DNA from: Hyaloraphidium curvatum SAG 235-1 | Lineage: Eukaryota > Fungi > Monoblepharomycota | DNA length: 64,000 nt | Direction of reading: 5' to 3' | NCBI GenBank assembly: GCA_025558095.1 | Contig: JAIVFI010000023.1 | Location: forward strand, 558,001 to 622,000 | Shown: in pieces, positions 668 to 57,974 of the stretch | Layout: each line of letters begins with the position of its first letter | Position numbering within the stretch: position 1 is the first letter of the stretch | Position numbers and translations under genes: made by a program | The notes under the pieces: generated by a model | Database searches by the model: none | What the model was told of the DNA's origin: nothing | The model's input: only the letters and a program-made list of their open reading frames with translations

Positions 668-2735
668 TTCGGCTTCAAAAATAGCTTAAAGGCACGGAGA
701 GATGAATTTCGGTGCGGTGTAGCGGCTTGCGCCAAGCAGAGGGGGGATTGCGTCGGGGTGCGCCGTCGAGGGCGAGCGGGGCGAACGACTCCTCCTTGGA
801 GCGTCCACAAAAGTTGATTCGCAGCAGCTGAGGCGTCGGCAGCGATGGCAGGTGGTGGGCGGCCGGTGCCGATTTCGCGGCCCGCTTCGGTAGCGTCGGC
901 CGCGACTGCCCCCCGCGCCTCGGCGCCTCCGCCCCGCCCCGCCGGCCTCAGCGCCTCACGCGGCGTGTGCGGCGGTCGCCATCGCGGTCGTTCCTGCGGG
1001 ATGCGGCGAGCGGTGAGCAACGGCGCCGGCGATCCGCGGGCGCCCGCCCGCCCCGACGCGGCCGCGCATCGCCGCGCACGCCGCCGCCGGGGCCGCGGGG
1101 AGCTCCTACCTTTTTTCATTCACGGGTTTCGGAGCGATCCGGCGCCCGGTGGGCCGCCGAGGCCGCAGAGAATAGAATGGAGCAGCCCCGGCCCGCGGGC
1201 TGAGTTCGTTTTTTCTGTCGGTTGCTCTTCATGTGAAACCTCGATTGCGCAGGCATGAAGGGCCATCAGGCGGCGGCACCGCGAGAGACGGAAGCAGTGC
1301 TGGCCGCTGCCTTCGGCGGGCGGTTTTGGGGGTTCTTCTCGTCCCGGGGACGCCGGTAATGCTCGCGAACCCGAACGGCAAGACCGCTGCCGGTCGGCGG
1401 CCGCACAGCCCGACTCCATTTTTTCGCACATTCAGCGAGGCGATCCGCTAGCTGACGGCGATCGGCGGGTGGAGAGGGCCCAATCTTTGCCCGACCGTGG
1501 CCGCGGTCGCGCCGGATGCATCCTTTCGATGACCTGGTGACCCGGGGAGACCGGGCCTTCCCTACCCCGCCGCTCGTTGGACCCTGGCCGTCGGACCGCC
1601 AAGCTCCGGCAGCGGCGCCCGCCCAGCATCACTTGTTCCAATGATCTCACCTATGTCCGCCGTCCATCCACCCTGGCGTGCCCTGGGGGACTTCGGGGAT
1701 GCGGATACTGCGGCACCGCCATAGTCAGGGACGGATGCCGCCGCTCCTCTATACGGCCCTCTCTCCCGCCACCGTACGACCCGCGAGCGGCAGGGTTGGG
1801 ACCTGCCCCTCGTTCCGGCGGCGATCCGGCAACGGGATAGCTCCCCGCCGCAGATGGCGCCCCCGGCGCGCGCCCGATTCGGGGGCCGCGATCCCACCGG
1901 TCCGGACCCTCCGGCCAGGCCTCGGACCGGTATCGACGCCGGGCGTCGGGCTTCACAGATCTGGGGTGCCAATCAGTCCTTTGGTGCTCTCAGGAATGGA
2001 TGGAAGCAGGGAAAGGGGGATATGGGGGGAAACCGGCGGGCCAACGCCGGCCGTCGCGCCGAACTGGGTGGAGGATGCACCCGAGGGAAATCCCAGCTGC
2101 GTGAGCCGGGGGACTGCAAACATCCGCTTCGGTGCAGCTTTTTTCGCCTTTGAAGCCGACGGAGTGCACTGCACGCGGGCAGGAGGGCGGCTGCGGGGTC
2201 CCATCCGTGTGGGAGGCGCGGCGATGCGCGGGGCCCGGCCGACGGCCGGGCCGTCATCGCGCCGGACAGGAGGCGTTTATTATGGCTGCGTGATGGATGT
2301 GGATGTCAACTTCGGCAGGCCAGCGGGGGTGTGGCTTGCGGTGGGGATGCGGGGCTTTGTTCGGGGATCCGCGAGGTCAGCCGGAAGCCGCGGGCGGTGT
2401 CGGTGCGAGGGGCAATCCGGATGGGTGCATCGGGTCGGTGCGGGAGAGGTGCTGCGGGATGGAACTGGGAAGGTGGTGCCGCCCGAGCTGGATTGGGCTG
2501 GGATGGGGAGGGCGCGCTGGACCTCGTGGCGGATTGCGAGGCCGAGGGTGCGGGGAACGTCAATCCAGCCCGGGGGGGACGCACAATAGCTCTCTAAAAG
2601 CAATCGTACGATCTCTGTGCCGCCCGCTTTGAATTCGTCGTGCTGGGTTGCGGGGCGCGTGGGCTCCGGCTCCACTTTCGGGAGTCGGGAAATCTTTAGG
2701 CCTCAACCGCCCGGTCAACCACCTTCGCCGGCACG

Positions 2736-5169
2736 ATGGGGAAGTCCTTCACGTCCCAGGAGGTCGCGCAGCACAACCACGACAAGGATGCTTGGTGCGT
2801 TGCCGCTCCCGGGAGGGGCCGTCCGGCGCGCGCGGGGCGTGCCGGGGACGCGGACCGGGTGGCGAGCGCTAAGCGTTGTTTGGACTTGCCGGGAGGCCGA
2901 TGGCACCGAGGGGCGCGGCTCGGACGTGCAGAGCGCTCGGAGGCGGTGCCGTCGAGTATTGCCGGGCTCCCGGCTCGGTCCGAGGCGTGTGCGGCGCGCC
3001 GGTGGCCGGGAGACAGGACGACCCGGCCCGGCACGTCCCCGGTGCCCCCTTTCCCTTCGCCTGCTCCCTCGCGCTCCGCCGAAAGTCACCGATATTCCCC
3101 TCAGGATCATCGTGGACAGCAAGGTCTACGATGTTACCAAGTTCCTCGACGAGGTCGGTGCCCGCGATCCCCCTTCCCCTCGCCGTGCCTGAACCACCAC
3201 CCCGCAGCACCCGGGCGGCCGCAAGATTCTCCTCCGCTTCGCCGGCACCGATGCATCGAAGCAGTTCCACACGTACCACTCGGATCTCGTGATGCAGCAG
3301 TTCGGCCCGAAGCTGCAGATCGGCGAGGTCGCGTCGCTGATCGAGGCGGTCAAGAAGGAGGACAAGCAGGTCGCGCTGCCGCCTACGGCGGCAATGCTGC
3401 TGTCGAACCAGAACGAGGTGTTTGGGGACCTCGCGCCGTTCTGCGAACCCGCCTGGTACCAGGACAACTGTGAGTTTCTCTGCTGGGGGAGCCTGTACCC
3501 GATGCTCACAAGGCTGTCCCCGCCAGACACGCCCTACTACAACGAGTCCCACAAGAAGCTCCGCGCCCACATCCGCAAGGTCCTCTCGGAGCACACCTGG
3601 CTCGAGCACGTCGGGTGCGTTGCCTTCCCTTTGCCCCTCCACACCTCATCTCATCCTGTTGCCCACAGCGAGTGGGAGAAGGCCATCCACAACGACCAGG
3701 GCCCGCCGCGCTGGGTGTTCGAGAAGGTCGGCGAGCTCGGGTTCTTCCGCGTCATCGTCGGCCCCCCGTGGGAGGCGCCGGACCTTCCCGGCATCCCGGA
3801 ACTGCCGTCGGGGATCAAGTCCAAGGACTGGGATATCTTCCACGAGCTCATCGTTCTTGGTTGGCTTTTTCGAATATGGCAAATGAAGTGGAAGCTAACG
3901 GATCATTTCGTATTCAGACGAGCTCACCAACTCGACCTCCGTCCTGGGCTCGCTCTTCGGTGGCCAGGCCTTGTGAGTCGCAATCACCCGCCGTTTCTGC
4001 AGCACCTCTGACAGTGTATCAGCGCCATCCCGCCCCTCGTCAAGTACGGCAAGGACTGGATGAAGAGGGACCTCGTCCCCGCGCTCTACTCGGGCAAGCA
4101 GACCGCCGCCCTCGCCATCTCGGAGCCCCACGCCGGCTCGGACGTGCAGAACATCCAGACCAACGGCAGGCTCAGCGACGACGGCAAGTTCTGGATCGTC
4201 AACGGCGAGAAGAAGTGGATCACCGGCGGCGTGCGTTCTCTCTCCCGCGCTCCTGCCATTCGTCGCTGATTGTGGTCGCGATTTTGCAGGTCTGGGCCGA
4301 TTGGTTCACCACTGCCGTCCGCACCGGCGGCCCCGGCGGCGCCGGCATCTCTGTCATGATGATCCCGCGCGGCAAGGGCGTCAAGACCCGGCACATCGAG
4401 ACCCAGGGCGGCGTCATGGGCGGCACCGCCTACGTCACCTTCGACGACGTCTACGTGCCCGTGGACAACGTCATCGGCAAGGTCAACGAGGGCTTCAAGG
4501 TCTTGATGGTAAAGCAGCTTGAGACGGAAGAGCACGGGGACAACTGCTGACTGATGACGGCAGACCAACTTCAACCACGAGCGCTTCCTCATCTGCGCCA
4601 ACACCAACCGCATGTCGCGTGTCTGCTACCAGGGTATGTCCGCCTCGAGTCCCGGATGTGCTCTGCGGCTCACACGACCCTTCCTATAGAGGCCCTCCAC
4701 TACGCTCACCGCCGCAAGACCTTCGGCAAGAACCTCATCGAGCACGGCGTCATCCGCGACAAGCTCGGCAACATGGCGCGCCAGATCGAGGCCACCCAGT
4801 CCTGGATCGAGCACCTCGCCTACCAGATGTACAAGATGCCCAAGCACATCCAGGACGCCCGCCTCGGCGGCCACTTTGCCCTGTGCAAGCTGCAGTGCAC
4901 GCGCACCTTCGAGTTCTGCGCCCGCGAGGCGTCGCAGATCCTCGGCGGCATCGCGTACACCAAGGGCGGCCAGGGTGGCCGTGTTGAGGCCCTATACAGG
5001 GCTGTTAGGGGCATGGCCATCCCCGGCGGTTCCGAGGAGATCATGGCAGATCTTGGCGTTAGGTGTGTATCTCCGTCTTTTGCTCGTTCCCGCGGAATCT
5101 CATTCGCCTCCGTGCCCTTACAGGCAGTCGACCAAGGTCGCAGCCCTCATGGGTGCCAACCTCGCCTAA
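2736..5169 (+). CDS. Cytochrome b5-domain acyl-CoA dehydrogenase (multi-exon)
   Basis: Spliced N-terminus MGKSFTSQEVAQHNHDKDAW/IIVDSKVYDVTKFLDE/HPGG (cyt b5 heme-binding motif), then ACAD motifs LAISEPHAGSDV, NGEKKWITGG, RKTFGKNLIEHGVIRDKL, QILGGIAY, IPGGSEEIM. Last exon ends ...GANLA* at 5169. Confidence 0.93.
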
Positions 5170-11800: not shown

Positions 11801-11832
11801 ACGAGTGTACTTTTATCCACAGAGGAGTTGAC

Positions 11833-12601
11833 TATATCTTCTTCGCTGGCTTCCCCTTGTAGCCTGCGGGGAGCTTCCCGGGCTTGAAGGGGTGCCGGAA
11901 CGGGTGGTTGTCTGCAGACAGATAGTGTAAATGCGAACATGTGTTGGGCGAACCTGCAAAAGCCAACCTTTCGGGTAACCGCAGATACCGAGATCGGGGT
12001 AAAGGCCGTTCGTAGTCTCCTCGACACAGATGGCGTTGGGGTCAGAGGCGGCCGCCGAGTCTTCCGTCTCCATGGGGACGCCGACAAACTCCTCCGCTGC
12101 GGCCGCGTTGGACGTGTCCAGGGTTGCGCCACCGAGCGGCTGGAATCCCTCGGACGAATCGGCCCCAAGAACGCCCGCGGAGTCCGTAAGCGGTTCCGCC
12201 TCGGCGATGCTGCGGCCCCCGGCGATCGCGGGACCGAGACTGCCCTGAAGTGCAGCGACAAGCTCGGGCTTGGAAAACATCGCCTTGACCTCCTCGCCGA
12301 GCTGGTCGTACTTGGACTGCAGTTCGGCAAGCTGGGCCTTGAGCTTCTTGTTCTCGGCCGCCAGCGCGGCAGCATCGAGCTTCTCCTCCCGGGCTTCGGC
12401 CGCGGCCGCATCTGCGGCGTCGAGATCGTCGAGCGAGACCTTGGCGACAGTGGCAGTCTTGGACTCGGCGGTCTTGGTCTCGGCCTTGGGTTCGGCCTTA
12501 ATCTCCGACGTGGTCTCCGATGCGTCCTTGGTCTCCGCCTTCGTCTCCGAAGCCGCCTTGGAGGCCGACGTCGACGCAGAGCTCGACGTCTTCGAAGACA
12601 T
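11833..12601 (-). CDS. Hypothetical protein: Ser/Ala/Glu/Lys-rich N-terminus, coiled coil, C-terminal Cys/His motif
   Basis: MSSKTSSSASTSASKAASETKAE...AENKKLKAQLAELQSKYDQL. A probable intron (~11912-11967) gives ...ICGYPKDNHPFRHPFKPGKLPAGYKGKPAKKI*. Codon usage is GC3-biased like neighbouring genes. Confidence 0.65.
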
Positions 12602-13169
12602 CGTTGCTGTAGGTTCCAACCAAAGGAGCAGCAGACAAGGAAATGCAGCATACACAGGAAGCCCCAAGCAGAAGACGTGCCGACGAGTTCGATTCGAGGA
12701 TGGAGAGGGAATGGCGCGGGCGGTGGGTGAGGAGGAGCTCAGGGTGTCCCCCGCCGCGCGGATCCCACCTAAGCTGCTGTTTGCCGGCGCCGCGTGAGAG
12801 CAAAGACCCCAACGAGGAGCAGCGACTGCTGTTGCGAGCGGCTGGCGCCCGAGTGGCGGGAAGGGCGCTCCGCTGCAGTGGGGTCCGCTGAGGAGGAGTG
12901 CGGCGCCCTGACGATCGGACCCTGGACGACGCCCGCTGTGGACAGATTCCCGTGGCCGACAAAGCCGTTCCTGCGGTTTCGTCCCTCCTCATCGTTCGAT
13001 TCTTATCGCCCGACGAGGTTCGTTCAACGCGGCCGGCGCCTGGCCGCTCCGGAGTCCGGGGAGACACGCGTTGCTCACCGCCGTTCCGACGACGGACCTT
13101 TGGCTCGCCATCCCACCTCTCGCTTCTCGCCTGCTCCCGTACGTGAAACGCAGACTTCACTGAGTCGCC

Positions 13170-15393
13170 ATGGGGGACCCATACGGAGCGCCGGGCGAGC
13201 TGAACCGGGCCCTCATGGACGGGAGCCTCCCCATTCAGGGCCAGGGGGCCATTCCCGCCGACCAGGCGGCGGCGCAGCTCGGAGGCTTGAAGCAGGTCAA
13301 CCAGAGGGGTTTCGCTGAGGGGAGGGGCAAGAAGAAGGCGCTCTTCATTGGGGTAAGCTGCCTCCTCGCCCACGAGCGATTCTATGTCGTAACACGAGTT
13401 CACGCGAACCAGATCAACTACCCCGGCACTGAGGCCGAGCTCCGGGGCTGTATCAACGATGTTCGGGTATGGATCGACAACAAAGGGCCCCAGAGTGCCC
13501 GCCGGTAGCTGACTGGCGTCCCACAGAACATGTACAACTTCGTCAAGACGAACTACGGCTTCGCGCAGCAGGTTAGTCTTGAGCCGTGCTCAACGGAGCT
13601 GATCGATTGAGCTGATTGTGCGGCCGTTCCAGGACATGATGGTCCTCACGGACGACAACCCGAACCCGTCGGGCAGGCCCACGGCGCAGAACATCATCGG
13701 CGCCATAGGCTGGCTCGTGAGCGGCGCTGCTCCCGGCGACTCGCTGTTTATGCACTACTCGGGACACGGTGAGCAGAAACGGAGCGGAGACGATAAACGG
13801 TACCTGACATTTGGTGTGTGCAGGGGGCACTGCGCGCGGCCAGGGCGGCACGATGCAGACCATCATCCCCGAGGACTACAAGAGGGTCGGCCAGATCTCG
13901 GACATCCAGCTGCACAACTACCTGTGCAAGAAGATCCCCGCCGGCTGCCAGCTGACGGCCATCTTCGACTCTTGCCACTCGGGCTCCGTGCTCAACCTCC
14001 CGTGGTCCTTCGTCGCCGCAGGCAGCCGCGAAGCCGGCGGCACCAAGATCGTCGAGGTCAACGGCCAATCCGGCATCGGCGCCTCCATGCTCTCCATGAT
14101 GTCGCAGTGGGGCAACAACCCGCAGCAGCTCATGAACATGATGTTGCAGATGCAGTCGCAAGGCTACGCGGTCACGAGCGGTGGCCGCGACCTGGTCACG
14201 GCCAACGCCATCGCCGACGCCCAGGTTCCGAAGTACACGATCCAGGCCGGTGGGTTTCGCAGGATCAGCGCGACAGATCTAAGGCGGCTGACATGTTGAT
14301 TGCGACCCGAAGGCGACACGCTGTGGAACCTCGTTCAGGCTGGCAAGGCCCCTTCGGTCGACGTCCTCATGCAGGCGAACCCCGGCATCGTGCCCGAGAT
14401 GCTCATGCCTGGCCAAGTCATCAACCTCGCGGTGCCGCCCAAGCCCCGGGACGCGCCCTTGATGATGGCAGGCGGGATATCGACCTACACGATCCAGGCC
14501 GGCGACACGTACTGGAACTTGGTGCAGAAGGGTTCGTTCGTTGGTTGCAATGGTCGTTGCAGCTCGGGTCCTGACCCGTCGATCCACCAGGTCGCGCGCC
14601 TTCCGTTGAAGCTCTCCAGGCCGCAAACCCGGGCGTCAACCCCGAGCAGCTCCAGATCGGCCAGGTCATCAACGTGCCCGAGTCGGCCGCGGCTGGTGTC
14701 GGCGGGCTCCGCTCCCTCGACGGCGTCCCCTCGGTTCCCTACACCATCGTGCAGGGCGACACGTACTGGAACCTTGTCGAGCAGGGCAAGGCCACCAGCG
14801 TCGACGCGCTCAACAAGGTCAACCCGGGCATCAACCCCGAGAACCTGCAGATCGGCCAGATCATCAACCTTCCCGTCTCTGCCACCGACCGCAGTACGTC
14901 CACTGCGTCCTCCTTCCTCCTAGCATTGCGATTTGCTAACCCGTCTGACCAGGTTTCGGCTCCTTCCTCGCCGCCCTCTTTGGCGGCTCCGTCGCACCCC
15001 AGTTCGTCCCGCCTCAGAACCCGACCGTCCCCCCGCCGCAGGCCCCCCCGGCAGGCAGTGGAGGGCAGGCCATGACCGGCCTCCAGGTCGACATCACGCA
15101 GGGCACCTGCATCCAGCTTTCCGGCTGCCAGGACGACCAGACCTCGGCGGACGCGACCATCGGCGGCAAGCCGACCGGCGCGCTGTCCTGGGCCTTCCTC
15201 ACGGCCATGGCGCAGATGCAGCGGCCGACGTACGAGCAGCTGATCCTGAAGATCCGGCAGTTGCTCGCCGGCAAGTTCACCCAGATTCCCCGTAAGTGGT
15301 GCCCGCGGACGGTGCCGCTGCCGTTGCTGACTCCAGATGGCAGAGCTGTCGACCGGGTATCAGATGGATCTCAAGGCGCCGTTCTCTCTCTAA
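13170..15393 (+). CDS. Metacaspase (peptidase C14) with three LysM domains inserted between p20 and p10
   Basis: Spliced: KKALFIG/INYPGTEAELRGCINDVR, catalytic HYSGHG (His codon 13765) and IFDSCHSG (Cys codon 13973). Three repeats of YTIxxGDTxWNL...ANPGIxPExLxxGQVIN(L/V) at ~14234-14875. p10 region: SGCQDDQTSADATIGGKPTGALSWAF...FTQIPQLSTGYQMDLKAPFSL*. Introns include 13353-13412, 13467-13526, 13572-13632 and 13769-13823. Confidence 0.93.
14234..14875 (+). repeat. Three tandem LysM domain-coding repeats
   Basis: YTIQAGDTLWNLVQAGKAPSVDVLMQANPGIVPEMLMPGQVINL; YTIQAGDTYWNLVQKGRAPSVEALQAANPGVNPEQLQIGQVINVP; YTIVQGDTYWNLVEQGKATSVDALNKVNPGINPENLQIGQIINLP. Confidence 0.9.
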
Positions 15394-15428: not shown

Positions 15429-16382
15429 CTAGAGGCGCGACTTGCCGTTCCAGGACTTGTATCCCGGTCCCGGGCGGCTGCCCTGCTTCGCGTCGAACGT
15501 GCCGGCCTCCACGTCGGCGATGAAGCGGACCGTCTCGCGCACGCACTCGGCTGGCTTCTCGTAGATAAGCCAATGCCCGCAGTCGTCCAAGTCCACGAGG
15601 CGGATCCGGTCCGGATGCCTGCGGTAAAGCCACCATCCGTTCTCGACGCGCGCGATGCGGTCGTCCCGGCCTTGAAGCAGCAGGATAGGGGCGTTCCCGC
15701 CCGCCAAGTAGTCCTCTTTCGGCGTGACGAAGGTGGCCTTGCTCTGCGCCCGGAGAACGCGAAAGTCGGCCTCACGCTGGAGCTTCTCGTCCGGGGTGAG
15801 CTCCGACTCGGGCTTCGGCCTGCGGACGAGCGAGGCCACAAGGGCATCATCTGTCTTGTCCGAAGCCAGGATGAACTTGGTGAGGATGACCCGTTCCGCG
15901 AACGGCATGCTGCGCTCCTTGTTGAGCCGTCGCTGCGCGGCGTCGACCTCCTTGGACGCCGGGAACAGGCCTCCCGAGGCGTACATCACGAGGCCCTTGA
16001 CCAGATCGGGCCGGTCCGCCGCGACGCAGCGTGCCGTGCGATGACCATAGGCCCAGCCACCGAGAAAGACCTTCCGGCCCTTCCACAGGTGCTCGATGAG
16101 CATGACAACGTCCTGGGCCAGGAAATGCATGTCGACTTTCGGAGGAAACGCCGCGTCTCGGGTTCCCCCTTCCATGCAGCGGGGCGAGGCGACGATTATT
16201 CGGAGATCGGGCCGGGCTGCGAGCAGCTGGGCGGGGAACTTGTGCATTGTGCCGGCTCCCGAGCCCATGCCAGGCAGGAGGACGAACGGGATTCCGTTCT
16301 CGGGCCCCAGGGCACGGTACGAGAGCACGAGGCCCGGGGCGACCTCGGCCAGCGACGGCGGAACCGAAGAAATGTCCTGCAT
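15429..16382 (-). CDS. Alpha/beta-hydrolase fold protein with Ala at the nucleophile position (GWAYG)
   Basis: FVLLPGMGSG, DMHFLAQDVV, FLGGWAYGHRTAR, PDLVKGLV, PILLLQGRDD, DCGHWLIYEKP. No introns are needed. Confidence 0.85.
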   Translation of the reverse strand: MQDISSVPPSLAEVAPGLVLSYRALGPENGIPFVLLPGMGSGAGTMHKFPAQLLAARPDLRIIVASPRCMEGGTRDAAFPPKVDMHFLAQDVVMLIEHLWKGRKVFLGGWAYGHRTARCVAADRPDLVKGLVMYASGGLFPASKEVDAAQRRLNKERSMPFAERVILTKFILASDKTDDALVASLVRRPKPESELTPDEKLQREADFRVLRAQSKATFVTPKEDYLAGGNAPILLLQGRDDRIARVENGWWLYRRHPDRIRLVDLDDCGHWLIYEKPAECVRETVRFIADVEAGTFDAKQGSRPGPGYKSWNGKSRL

Positions 16383-16495
16383 GGCTACACTATCTGAAGC
16401 GGTAGAGGCACGAAACGCCGCCTGCGTCAACGCGGGCACCGTCAGTCACCGTGCGGATTGACCGCCACCCCATCGACGCGAGCCCGCCCCGCACC

Positions 16496-55473: not shown

Positions 55474-57974
55474 ATGTTGCGTCTCGGTTTGCGGTACTTG
55501 CCGCGCCCCACCTTCCCTCGTCGGCGATCCGGGGCCGCATCGCGCATGTTCGCGCCCTCCCGGCATCCCTGGCCGACGGCAATGGCCGTTGGTGCCGACC
55601 TCGGCGGGGACTTGGAGCCTCCGCCTGGACCAGCACCCCCATCGGAGTCTCGCGACCTCCGGACGCCGCGTGTGCTCCCGCGTCCCGCGAGCTTCCAGCT
55701 CGATTGGCGGGATATCGTGCGCGACACGGATTCCTCCACCGGTCGACCGCGAAAGCTCGGCAGCGGAGCTTTCGGGGTGGTGTACGCGGCCAAGCTGAAG
55801 AGGGACATGGACACACTGGTCGCGCTCAAGATTCTGCAGTGGTCGGGCGATGAGGGACTCCGGCGGAAGCAGCACGAGTCTTTTTCCCGGGAGGTCGAGG
55901 TCTGGCAGACCCTGACGGACGACCACGGTATGTCGCGTTCTGCGGAGAGGATGGCCTCGCGCTGAACTTGGTGCAGTGCTCCGATTCCTGGGCTACACCG
56001 TCGATCCTTATCTCACGCTGGTATCGGAAGTGGCGGAGACGGATCTCGCGAGCCTACTCCAGGGCCCGCCCCGACCAACATTTCCGTGGGTTGACGCGCA
56101 GCGCTGCTTGCTCCATGTCGCGCGCGGCATGAGACACCTCCATTCGAAGGACATTGTTCATTGCGATCTGAAGCCCGCCAACATCCTACGACGAAACGGG
56201 ATCTATAAAGTCGCCGACTTTGGGCTTTCCGCCTTCAGAGACTCTGCTTTCGGCGGAACCAGCGGCTATCTCGCCCCCGAAGCTCTTTTACGGGACCTGG
56301 GACCGCGTGGGCTCCCATCAGATGTGTATAGCTACGGGATTATTGCTCACGAGCTCAATGTGGGACAGTGTCCTGATCTGCCGGGATGCTTGGTCTACCG
56401 CTCAGGATCACCTTTGCGGCGGCCGTTTGGAATCACCGATGCCATGTGGAACTTGATCGAGAGCTGTACGGACTGGGAACCACTGGAACGGCCTGATTTC
56501 CGGGCCATCATCGATACTGTGGAGCACTTGACCATCGTACCGATGGTGGATCGCATTATCTTGCAGGTTGGAAACGGCACTTACGGCGCGGATGGGGATC
56601 CGAAGAACCTTCCGATGGCGACGGACAGCGTCGATCTGCTCAACACGGTGTTGACATCCTTCTATGGTTTTTCGGGCGGGCTTAACTACAACCAAAGCGC
56701 AGCTGAGATTCGCAGGGCCGCAAGCGCCGCCGTGTCCGACATCCGGACTTCCTCGGGGACTTCTCTCATTCACCTTGTTGGTCACGGCGGGGATCGGAAC
56801 GGACGATTCGTATTCGAAGGCGCCTGCTCTCCAGACGCCATTGGTTCAGGGGAAGTCAACACGGTGGACCTTGAGCATGATATTCTTGCACGAATCCCCA
56901 AAGATCATGCGGGTCTCGTGGTCGCTCTGCTGGACTGCTGTCGGGGCGCTGCTGGGGAGGAGGATCGGCCCTTTGAGGAGATAAGGCCGAACGTCCTCCT
57001 TGGGTTCGCCGCCAGCCATAACGCTAAAGCTTACGGCTGTCTGTACTCATTTCTGGTGGCCGAGGAGCTCTGGAGACGCTTTAACCGCCAGTCAGCTCCC
57101 TTCTCGTGGCGCAGTGCTCTTGATGCTGTCCAGAAGCGGATCATCAAGAGGACCAACGTGGCCGCTTTGCAACAGGACACGAAAGACGCCGATTTAGCGC
57201 AAAAGGTGCAGCAAGTTCCCGAACACATGCCCATGAGTGGTGAGATTAATTGGACGGAGAACCGCTTCCTGCTTGTGAGCTTGCCAGTCGCGAATCCAAG
57301 CAGTTTTATTGACCTTCGTCTCCTCGCAGAAACCGTTACCGAAAACTGCGACGGAAGCAAGTGAACAGGAAAGTCTGCGCCTATCTTTTGAACGACACAC
57401 GAGGGAGCTCGAAGAAACCAAGTCATTGGAGCAGAGCTACCCACTTGCGTCCTACATGTCCTACATGTCTGATCTCTTTGATTCACCGTACCGATTGGAG
57501 CTGATCTTCTCTGATGGATCTTCACGGAGCATTGGTGGTGATTCGGGGATCGCCGCGGGGGAGATGCTGCTCCAGATCCACGCAATGTCATCAAGCCCGC
57601 TAACTCCGCAGCGAATCAAGAGCTTCCATCTTCAATCTTTGAAGCATCAATCCCGTTACCATCTTCCCCGGCTACCAGGATCAACGCTTTTCTTGTTTCG
57701 AGGCTTCGCAGAGGAAGCGATTGAGCAGGCATTTGGTGGATTTGCAGGCCCGGAGACTGCCACGGGGTCTGGGCGGGTCACCACCGCCGGCGAATCCAAG
57801 TTTGGCAAACGCGTCGGTGCAGAGGATGAAATCATACCCCTGGAAGCTCGGAAGCGCGGCAAGCTTGCGGAAACCTCGCGAGTGAGCAGCACGGTGATAG
57901 CACTCACCGGAGGTTCCGCTTGGCTCGCCTCCCACTTTCTTTCCGGCGCCAACAACGGCGCGGACGATAGTTGA
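55474..57974 (+). CDS. TKL kinase fused to a caspase-like (peptidase C14) domain and a C-terminal domain
   Basis: Kinase nearly identical to 47862-48790 (intron 55928-55976). Then ILQVGNGTY...NLPMATDSVDLLNTVLTSFYGF, LIHLVGHGG (His 56783), VALLDCCRG (Cys 56939), LLGFAA, VQKRI...QQVP. Intron 57275-57329 brings in the 57309-57974 frame. Start is either 55474 or 55582. Confidence 0.82.

Follow-up and report, generated by a model that had tools for sequence, protein, structure and literature searches.

The question raised by this locus is whether one gene of Hyaloraphidium curvatum, an aquatic fungus of an early-branching lineage, encodes a metacaspase whose p20 and p10 regions are separated by three LysM domains, and, if so, how such a protease may be switched on. 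The first-pass annotation of the window (the whole stretch of 64,000 nucleotides that was analysed) had read such a gene from the letters, and had proposed a cytosolic enzyme gated by chitin or peptidoglycan.

Gene structure, relatives and the public gene model

The nine coding exons (Table 1) join into a single frame of 584 amino acids without stops and with a GC3 of 0.90. All eight coding introns are of the GT..AG type and 52–63 nt long, and a CTRAY-type branch site is found in seven of them. In one RNA contig assembled from a public run, all eight coding introns and a further intron in the 5' UTR are removed exactly, and the displayed pieces of the contig have zero mismatches to the gene. 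These spliced joints indicate that the sequencing run is RNA, and the gene is expressed in this run, the only one available. The p20, LysM and p10 exons all lie on the same contig; the LysM exons are thus not a separate unit, and the exon chain stands as it had been proposed. The transcript evidence is a single assembled contig from a single study, and contigs may lose rare isoforms.

In a Pfam profile search done exon by exon, LysM is above the cut-off on exons 6 and 7, and Peptidase_C14 is above it on exon 8 (24.1 bits) and below it on exon 4 (19.4 bits). The motifs HYSGHG, DSCHSG and SGCQD are found at aa 135, aa 188 and aa 512, respectively. Contig, profiles and motifs together bear out the claim that a p20 with its dyad, three LysMs and a p10 belong to one spliced gene. 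The spliced leader contains no ATG and has an in-frame stop three codons upstream, and the hydropathy of the 584-aa protein reveals neither a signal peptide nor a TM segment (maximum 19-residue mean 1.28), as the first-pass annotation had stated.

The RNA contig continues through an alpha/beta-hydrolase gene that lies tail-to-tail with the metacaspase gene. It also joins the metacaspase gene with a head-to-head gene, which suggests overlapping 5' ends.

Table 1. Features of the metacaspase-LysM gene and of other genes in the window (positions are those of the window)
Feature	Position	Strand	Evidence or remark
Metacaspase-LysM gene, Hyaloraphidium curvatum	13170-15393	+	9 coding exons, 584 aa
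Coding exons 1-5	13170-13352, 13413-13466, 13527-13571, 13633-13768, 13824-14249	+	
Coding exons 6-9	14313-14531, 14591-14893, 14953-15291, 15344-15393	+	
5' UTR intron, 136 nt	13018-13153	+	RNA contig joint, GT..AG
N-terminal 52 aa, not Pro-rich (8% Pro), no signal peptide	13170-13325	+	63% identity to relative
p20, aa 53-201, exons 1-5	13326-14008	+	Pfam C14; Yca1 match; AF2/Foldseek
S1-pocket Cys74 and Asp77 (TbMCA2 C92, D95)	13449-13460	+	Sequence comparison
Catalytic His139	13765-13767	+	
L5/cation loop, shortened, non-acidic, ending in Met150 (TbMCA2 Asp173)	13826-13855	+	Confident beta-hairpin in model
Asp166 (kept; TbMCA2 D189) and Ile167 (in place of D190)	13901-13906	+	
Catalytic Cys190	13973-13975	+	
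Asn197 (in place of TbMCA2 Asp220)	13994-13996	+	
Linker A, Met/Gln-rich, partly helical	14009-14230	+	34% identity to relative; low pLDDT
G-G-R-[DE]-[LI]-V-T motif (Arg261), candidate self-inhibitory/autocleavage site	14180-14200	+	Putative role
LysM1, aa 276-322, split by intron 5	14231-14434	+	
LysM2, aa 339-384, split by intron 6	14483-14679	+	
LysM3, aa 404-449	14737-14874	+	Pfam; closest solved relatives 5k2l, Ecp6
D-[RK]-x-F-G-S (Arg455) and amphipathic segment directly after LysM3; second candidate cleavage site	14887-14990	+	
Pro-rich spacer (linker B)	14991-15101	+	Length differs among copies
p10, aa 506-584, and stop	15102-15393	+	Pfam C14 above cut-off; 80% identity to relative
Head-to-head gene	11813-12770	-	5' UTR intron at about 12607-12768 (-)
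Alpha/beta-hydrolase gene, tail-to-tail	15429-16391	-	RNA contig
Protein kinase domain followed by Peptidase_C14	55976-57361	+	One ORF

The p10 exon is 100% identical to the NCBI protein KAI9016168.1 of H. curvatum. In this model of 304 aa, linker A is fused straight to p10 via a 931-nt GT..AG gap, and all three LysMs are lost. The LysM region was treated as an intron, which has hidden the architecture, and the RNA contig contradicts that model.

When KAI9016168.1 was compared with 1.84 billion representatives, one close match was obtained (P0003, 61%), encoded in run SRR23967301 on a contig of 23.7 kb, which has several neighbour genes in common with the window. Just two introns, placed differently, interrupt the P0003 gene, whose 585-aa product again comprises p20, three LysMs and p10. 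The identity between the two proteins is 72% in p20, 77–83% in the LysMs, 80% in p10 and 34% in linker A. The corresponding dN values are 0.205 (p20), 0.196 (LysMs), 0.153 (p10) and 0.581 (spacers), with a dS of about 2, which is near saturation. By this measure the LysMs are conserved as strongly as the protease, and strong constraint acts on both p20 and p10. Moreover, each repeat is closest to the repeat at the same position in the relative (77–83%, versus 57–67% for other positions). The alpha/beta-hydrolase gene is likewise a neighbour in the relative, in a different arrangement; the neighbour genes are not taken as partners, because they are shared with the relative yet locally rearranged.

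A third organism, a more distant eukaryote than the source of P0003, is represented by P0154 and P0266 from JGI sample 3300059473, whose contigs also carry Arf and CLP1/NOL9 genes. Here one unspliced ORF runs from the Cys half of p20 through three LysMs to p10, which confirms the layout independently of any splice model. The search elsewhere for the C14-LysM-C14 layout, which had been advised at the outset, has therefore placed it in at least two organisms besides Hyaloraphidium. Other collections yielded no further copies. Among the best 150 metacaspase representatives, none except P0003 has a LysM. A scan of JGI metagenome DNA for the architecture gave four weak matches, to LysM only, and the architecture was not found in viral contigs. 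In bacterial genomes and phage records, only the LysM block was matched, with no C14 within 2–4 kb of the bacterial matches. In the ESM Atlas, only C14 clusters (under 0.9) were retrieved by features, and only LysM clusters (TM under 0.3) by structure. No named Gonapodya or Monoblepharella copy is among the database matches; annotation may mask one, as it did in Hyaloraphidium.

With these copies at hand, the public model may be judged. It would hold if the LysM region were skipped always or predominantly, so that the product is a metacaspase of ordinary length. A GT..AG pair does exist 931 nt apart, and a rare isoform could have escaped the contig. Against this, the LysM exons are present in the RNA contig, the remaining introns of the gene are only 52–136 nt, P0154/P0266 have the Cys, the LysMs and p10 within one unspliced ORF, and P0003 keeps the reading frame despite intron positions elsewhere. 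The short form as the product is already largely refuted, and we regard it as highly improbable. A public gene model that removed the unusual part is thus corrected.

The protease core and its cation site

The core has the caspase-haemoglobinase fold with both p20 and p10, as indicated by Pfam C14 and by AF2 and Foldseek on the LysM-less NCBI model. That model matches Yca1 at an E value of 1e-57, and its AF2 structure (pTM 0.82) has fungal metacaspases as its best Foldseek matches (7qp1, E 2e-22). The dyad His139/Cys190 is intact. The acidic S1 pocket is likewise intact, with C74, D77, S137 and D188 corresponding to C92, D95, S156 and D211 of TbMCA2; from this pocket, cleavage after Arg or Lys is predicted.

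The cation site shows a distinct pattern. The Ca2+ ligands of TbMCA2 are D173, D189, D190 and D220 (PMC4357240), and 254 of 310 surveyed domains have D-D-D-D at these positions. The four positions read M-D-I-N in Hyaloraphidium, V-D-V-N in P0003 and M-D-V-N in P0154, and three of the four aspartates, together with the acidic L5 loop, are missing in all LysM-metacaspase copies. The loop after the catalytic His has 9 residues and is non-acidic, versus 14 residues in 262 of the 310 domains. In the Ca2+-independent AtMC9, Val stands in place of one of the four site aspartates, and the L5 acidic residues are absent (PMC10235996). Given these similar losses, Ca2+-independent activity of the LysM-metacaspase is a reasonable inference. 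In AtMC4, however, processing is impaired when the L5 acids are removed (PMC7206013), so that loss of the Ca2+ site can also mean a weak enzyme. The first-pass annotation had not seen that both proposed Ca2+ sites are lost while the dyad and the S1 pocket stay intact; this loss strengthens its idea of a non-standard activation.

In a tree of p20 and p10 built without plant type II rows, the three LysM enzymes and the LysM-free P0033 (JGI 3300030625, 16-1017) form one clade (99/96) among chytrid metacaspases. P0033 has M, D, I, S at the Ca2+ site; its branch is long, and its placement inside the clade is not settled by the tree. As P0033 is decayed at this site and has no LysM, the change may predate, or be independent of, the LysM insertion; loss of the Ca2+ site need not be linked to the LysMs.

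The sequence score is also higher for fungal type I than for plant type II. With the fungal type I enzymes (Yca1/Mca1, CgMCA-I, and those of Chytridium, Dinochytrium and Rhizoclosmatium) the protein shares fold, dyad and S1 pocket, and its core lies among chytrid sequences. It differs from them in the degenerate Ca2+ site with one of four aspartates kept, the lack of a Pro/Gln-rich prodomain, and the lack of a short linker, the distance from Cys to p10 being 322 aa versus a median of 84, with three LysMs inserted. With the plant type II enzymes AtMC4 and AtMC9 (AtMCA-IIf), it shares the order p20, basic-motif linker, insert and p10, as well as the long linker and the absence of a prodomain; the insert is a helical UNK domain in those enzymes and three LysMs here. 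The comparison with type II enzymes made in the first-pass annotation therefore holds for the p20-linker-p10 layout, but only as an analogy, since the core groups with chytrid metacaspases. Fold and active site make the protein a genuine metacaspase, which departs from canonical type I and is type II-like in layout only.

The genome holds other genes of this kind. Contig C10 (967-2424, + strand, of the piece searched) carries a type I metacaspase gene without introns, whose product has a Pro-rich N-terminus and a near-complete Ca2+ site of D,D,N,D and forms a long branch in the tree. Contig C4, at about 294.3-296.2 kb (1204-3075, - strand, of the piece), carries one long ORF in which ankyrin, FHA and Peptidase_C14 are fused, with the motifs HYSGHG and DGC. 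Since these two coexist with it, the LysM-metacaspase is a derived extra copy. The window itself contains a kinase-C14 gene (Table 1). Among the database proteins, P0004-P0027 and many similar ones are long and have metacaspase domains in tandem, two to four per protein, with catalytic residues missing in several cases; P0028 joins an EF-hand to a metacaspase, and P0057 is a metacaspase with a dockerin tag.

LysM modules and linker motifs

The repeats are LysMs by Pfam score and by the beta-alpha-alpha-beta fold that they adopt in the AF2 model of P0154. Their closest solved relatives are the chitinase 5k2l (E 1e-12) and Ecp6 (4b8v); the closest sequences to LysM2 are Firmicutes multi-LysM proteins (62–67%), and there is a weak match to the spore-coat protein SafA. 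A bacterial origin is not claimed, because the domains are short. All nine repeats retain the two groove loops, G-D-T-x-aromatic and L-x-x-G-Q. LysMs bind GlcNAc-X-GlcNAc in chitin and peptidoglycan alike, and more repeats give more binding potential (PMC4083421). From the groove motifs, binding of a GlcNAc polymer by the three LysMs is predicted; chitin and peptidoglycan are not separable by LysM sequence here. Chitin is slightly favoured as the polymer because Hyaloraphidium makes chitin. An aromatic-residue rule for chitin versus peptidoglycan was rejected as non-discriminating, the same aromatic position being shared by 504 of 526 Firmicutes-type repeats.

Ecp6 and the CERK1-type receptors also have three LysM repeats, with the groove motifs and the fold that are common to LysM modules. 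The LysM proteins with known roles among 5k2l, Ecp6, and the Firmicutes and CERK1-type proteins are, as far as is known, secreted or extracellular. In contrast, the metacaspase LysMs are cytosolic, almost cysteine-free, loosely tethered and placed inside a protease. A further gene on genome contig C8 (about 369.4-370.3 kb; 732-1650, + strand, of the piece) encodes a Pro-rich protein with two C-terminal LysMs that are 62–67% identical to those of the metacaspase; it has no obvious signal peptide, and may be a source or a partner.

In the spacers, 30 of 165 positions are identical across the three organisms. Two clusters are conserved: G-G-R-[DE]-[LI]-V-T, which contains Arg261 and precedes LysM1, and D-[RK]-x-F-G-S, which contains Arg455 and follows LysM3. 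The G-G-R-[DE]-[LI] motif, which had also escaped the first-pass annotation, is present in all three organisms and absent from 202 other metacaspase linkers. In type II enzymes an Arg or Lys of the linker occupies the S1 pocket and must be cut, and the inserted domain then follows (PMC10235996, PMC7206013). By analogy, the Arg261 motif resembles this self-inhibitory residue, and R-[DE]-[LI] agrees with the P1/P1'/P2' preference of AtMC9 (PMC10235996).

The structural check that had been suggested, namely whether p20 and p10 assemble around the insertion, covered two parts of the protein: the LysM-less core folds, as described above, and the AF2 model of P0154 has three confident LysM folds. 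In that model, which is without the first half of p20, the whole has no fixed arrangement (pTM 0.41), the linkers are disordered, the segment after LysM3 is a low-confidence helix, and the Arg261 motif is without order (pLDDT about 29), with no docking in S1 seen.

Modes of activation and their significance

Our tentative preference, held at a confidence somewhat short of even, is for a Ca2+-independent, cytosolic, Arg/Lys-specific metacaspase zymogen whose LysMs bind a GlcNAc polymer and cluster zymogens for cutting in trans. Self-inhibition would come from the linker motif around Arg261, lodged in the active site. On their flexible tethers, the three LysMs would hold the polymer with avidity and so concentrate the zymogens, which would then cut each other at Arg261 and Arg455, releasing the LysM cassette and freeing the p20/p10 enzyme. 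Maturation in trans is documented for CgMCA-I (PMC9622860). The polymer might be any that reaches the cytosol, either the cell's own chitin (through damage or endospore formation) or the wall of an intruder. Against this proposal stand the fact that a cytosolic protein normally meets no chitin, the decayed Ca2+ site of the LysM-free P0033, the AtMC4 L5 result, the disorder of the Arg261 motif in the AF2 model with its half p20, and the sighting of the layout in only three organisms.

The LysMs may instead merely place the enzyme on the cell's own wall, for example where new endospore walls face leftover mother cytoplasm, at mother-wall rupture, or on the wall after lysis, with another trigger such as low pH; the protein would then be a developmental protease and not a sensor. 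Hyaloraphidium makes 4–8 spores within the mother cell (PMC6899921), and leftover cytoplasm could contact the new spore walls. Four contigs of its genome match chitin synthase, and GH18 matches are numerous. The LysM-metacaspase gene is transcribed in the only run available, AtMC9 is a precedent of pH activation, and an exon-wise genome search gave no NACHT matches, which is not proof of absence. The insertion in the regulatory linker and the conserved basic sites that flank it would, however, fit regulation better than an anchor, and we consider this explanation unlikely, if well worth keeping in view.

Two further explanations dispense with the sugar ligand or with the protease, respectively, and both appear improbable. 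If the LysMs were protein-binding or self-assembly modules, their cytosolic location, their similarity to Firmicutes multi-LysM proteins with the weak SafA match, and the second gene of the same LysM type on contig C8 would be readily accommodated; the intact groove loops of all nine repeats, and chitinase and Ecp6 LysMs as the best solved relatives, argue for a sugar. If the protease were weak or inactive after loss of its Ca2+ site, the protein might serve as a scaffold or as an Ecp6-like sink for GlcNAc oligomers, with which the missing ligands and acidic loop, the deficient AtMC4 L5 tetra-mutant and the Ecp6-like block of three LysMs are consistent. Yet both full copies retain the dyad and the complete S1 quartet, residues that many other surveyed domains have lost along with their Ca2+ site, and p20 and p10 are strongly constrained.

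With regard to precedents, no metacaspase-LysM fusion is described among the papers listed in searches of a mainly open-access literature, in agreement with the first-pass annotation; one paper with both Peptidase_C14 and LysM concerns separate proteins. Bacterial metacaspases with a putative peptidoglycan-binding domain in one chain make up 1.6% of surveyed sequences (PMC3501461), and the accessible text of that survey names neither LysM nor an insertion between p20 and p10 for them.

In its widest form, the preferred reading of a polymer-clustered zymogen would make the protein a one-chain intracellular sensor-effector of early-diverging fungi, in which cytosolic chitin or peptidoglycan takes the place of Ca2+ as the trigger, and the metacaspase then brings about defence or cell death with neither an NLR nor a membrane receptor involved. 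This extension is doubtful at present, and immunity and a developmental role on the cell's own chitin are about equally plausible. Known metacaspase triggers are Ca2+ or low pH. With the LysM-metacaspase, which has lost its Ca2+ site and has putative sugar-binding modules in its regulatory linker, one can ask directly if a cell-wall polymer is able to gate a clan CD protease, and if GlcNAc polymers are sensed by fungi intracellularly. Even without such gating, the enzyme would be of use, as a case from nature, for studying the loss of Ca2+ dependence.
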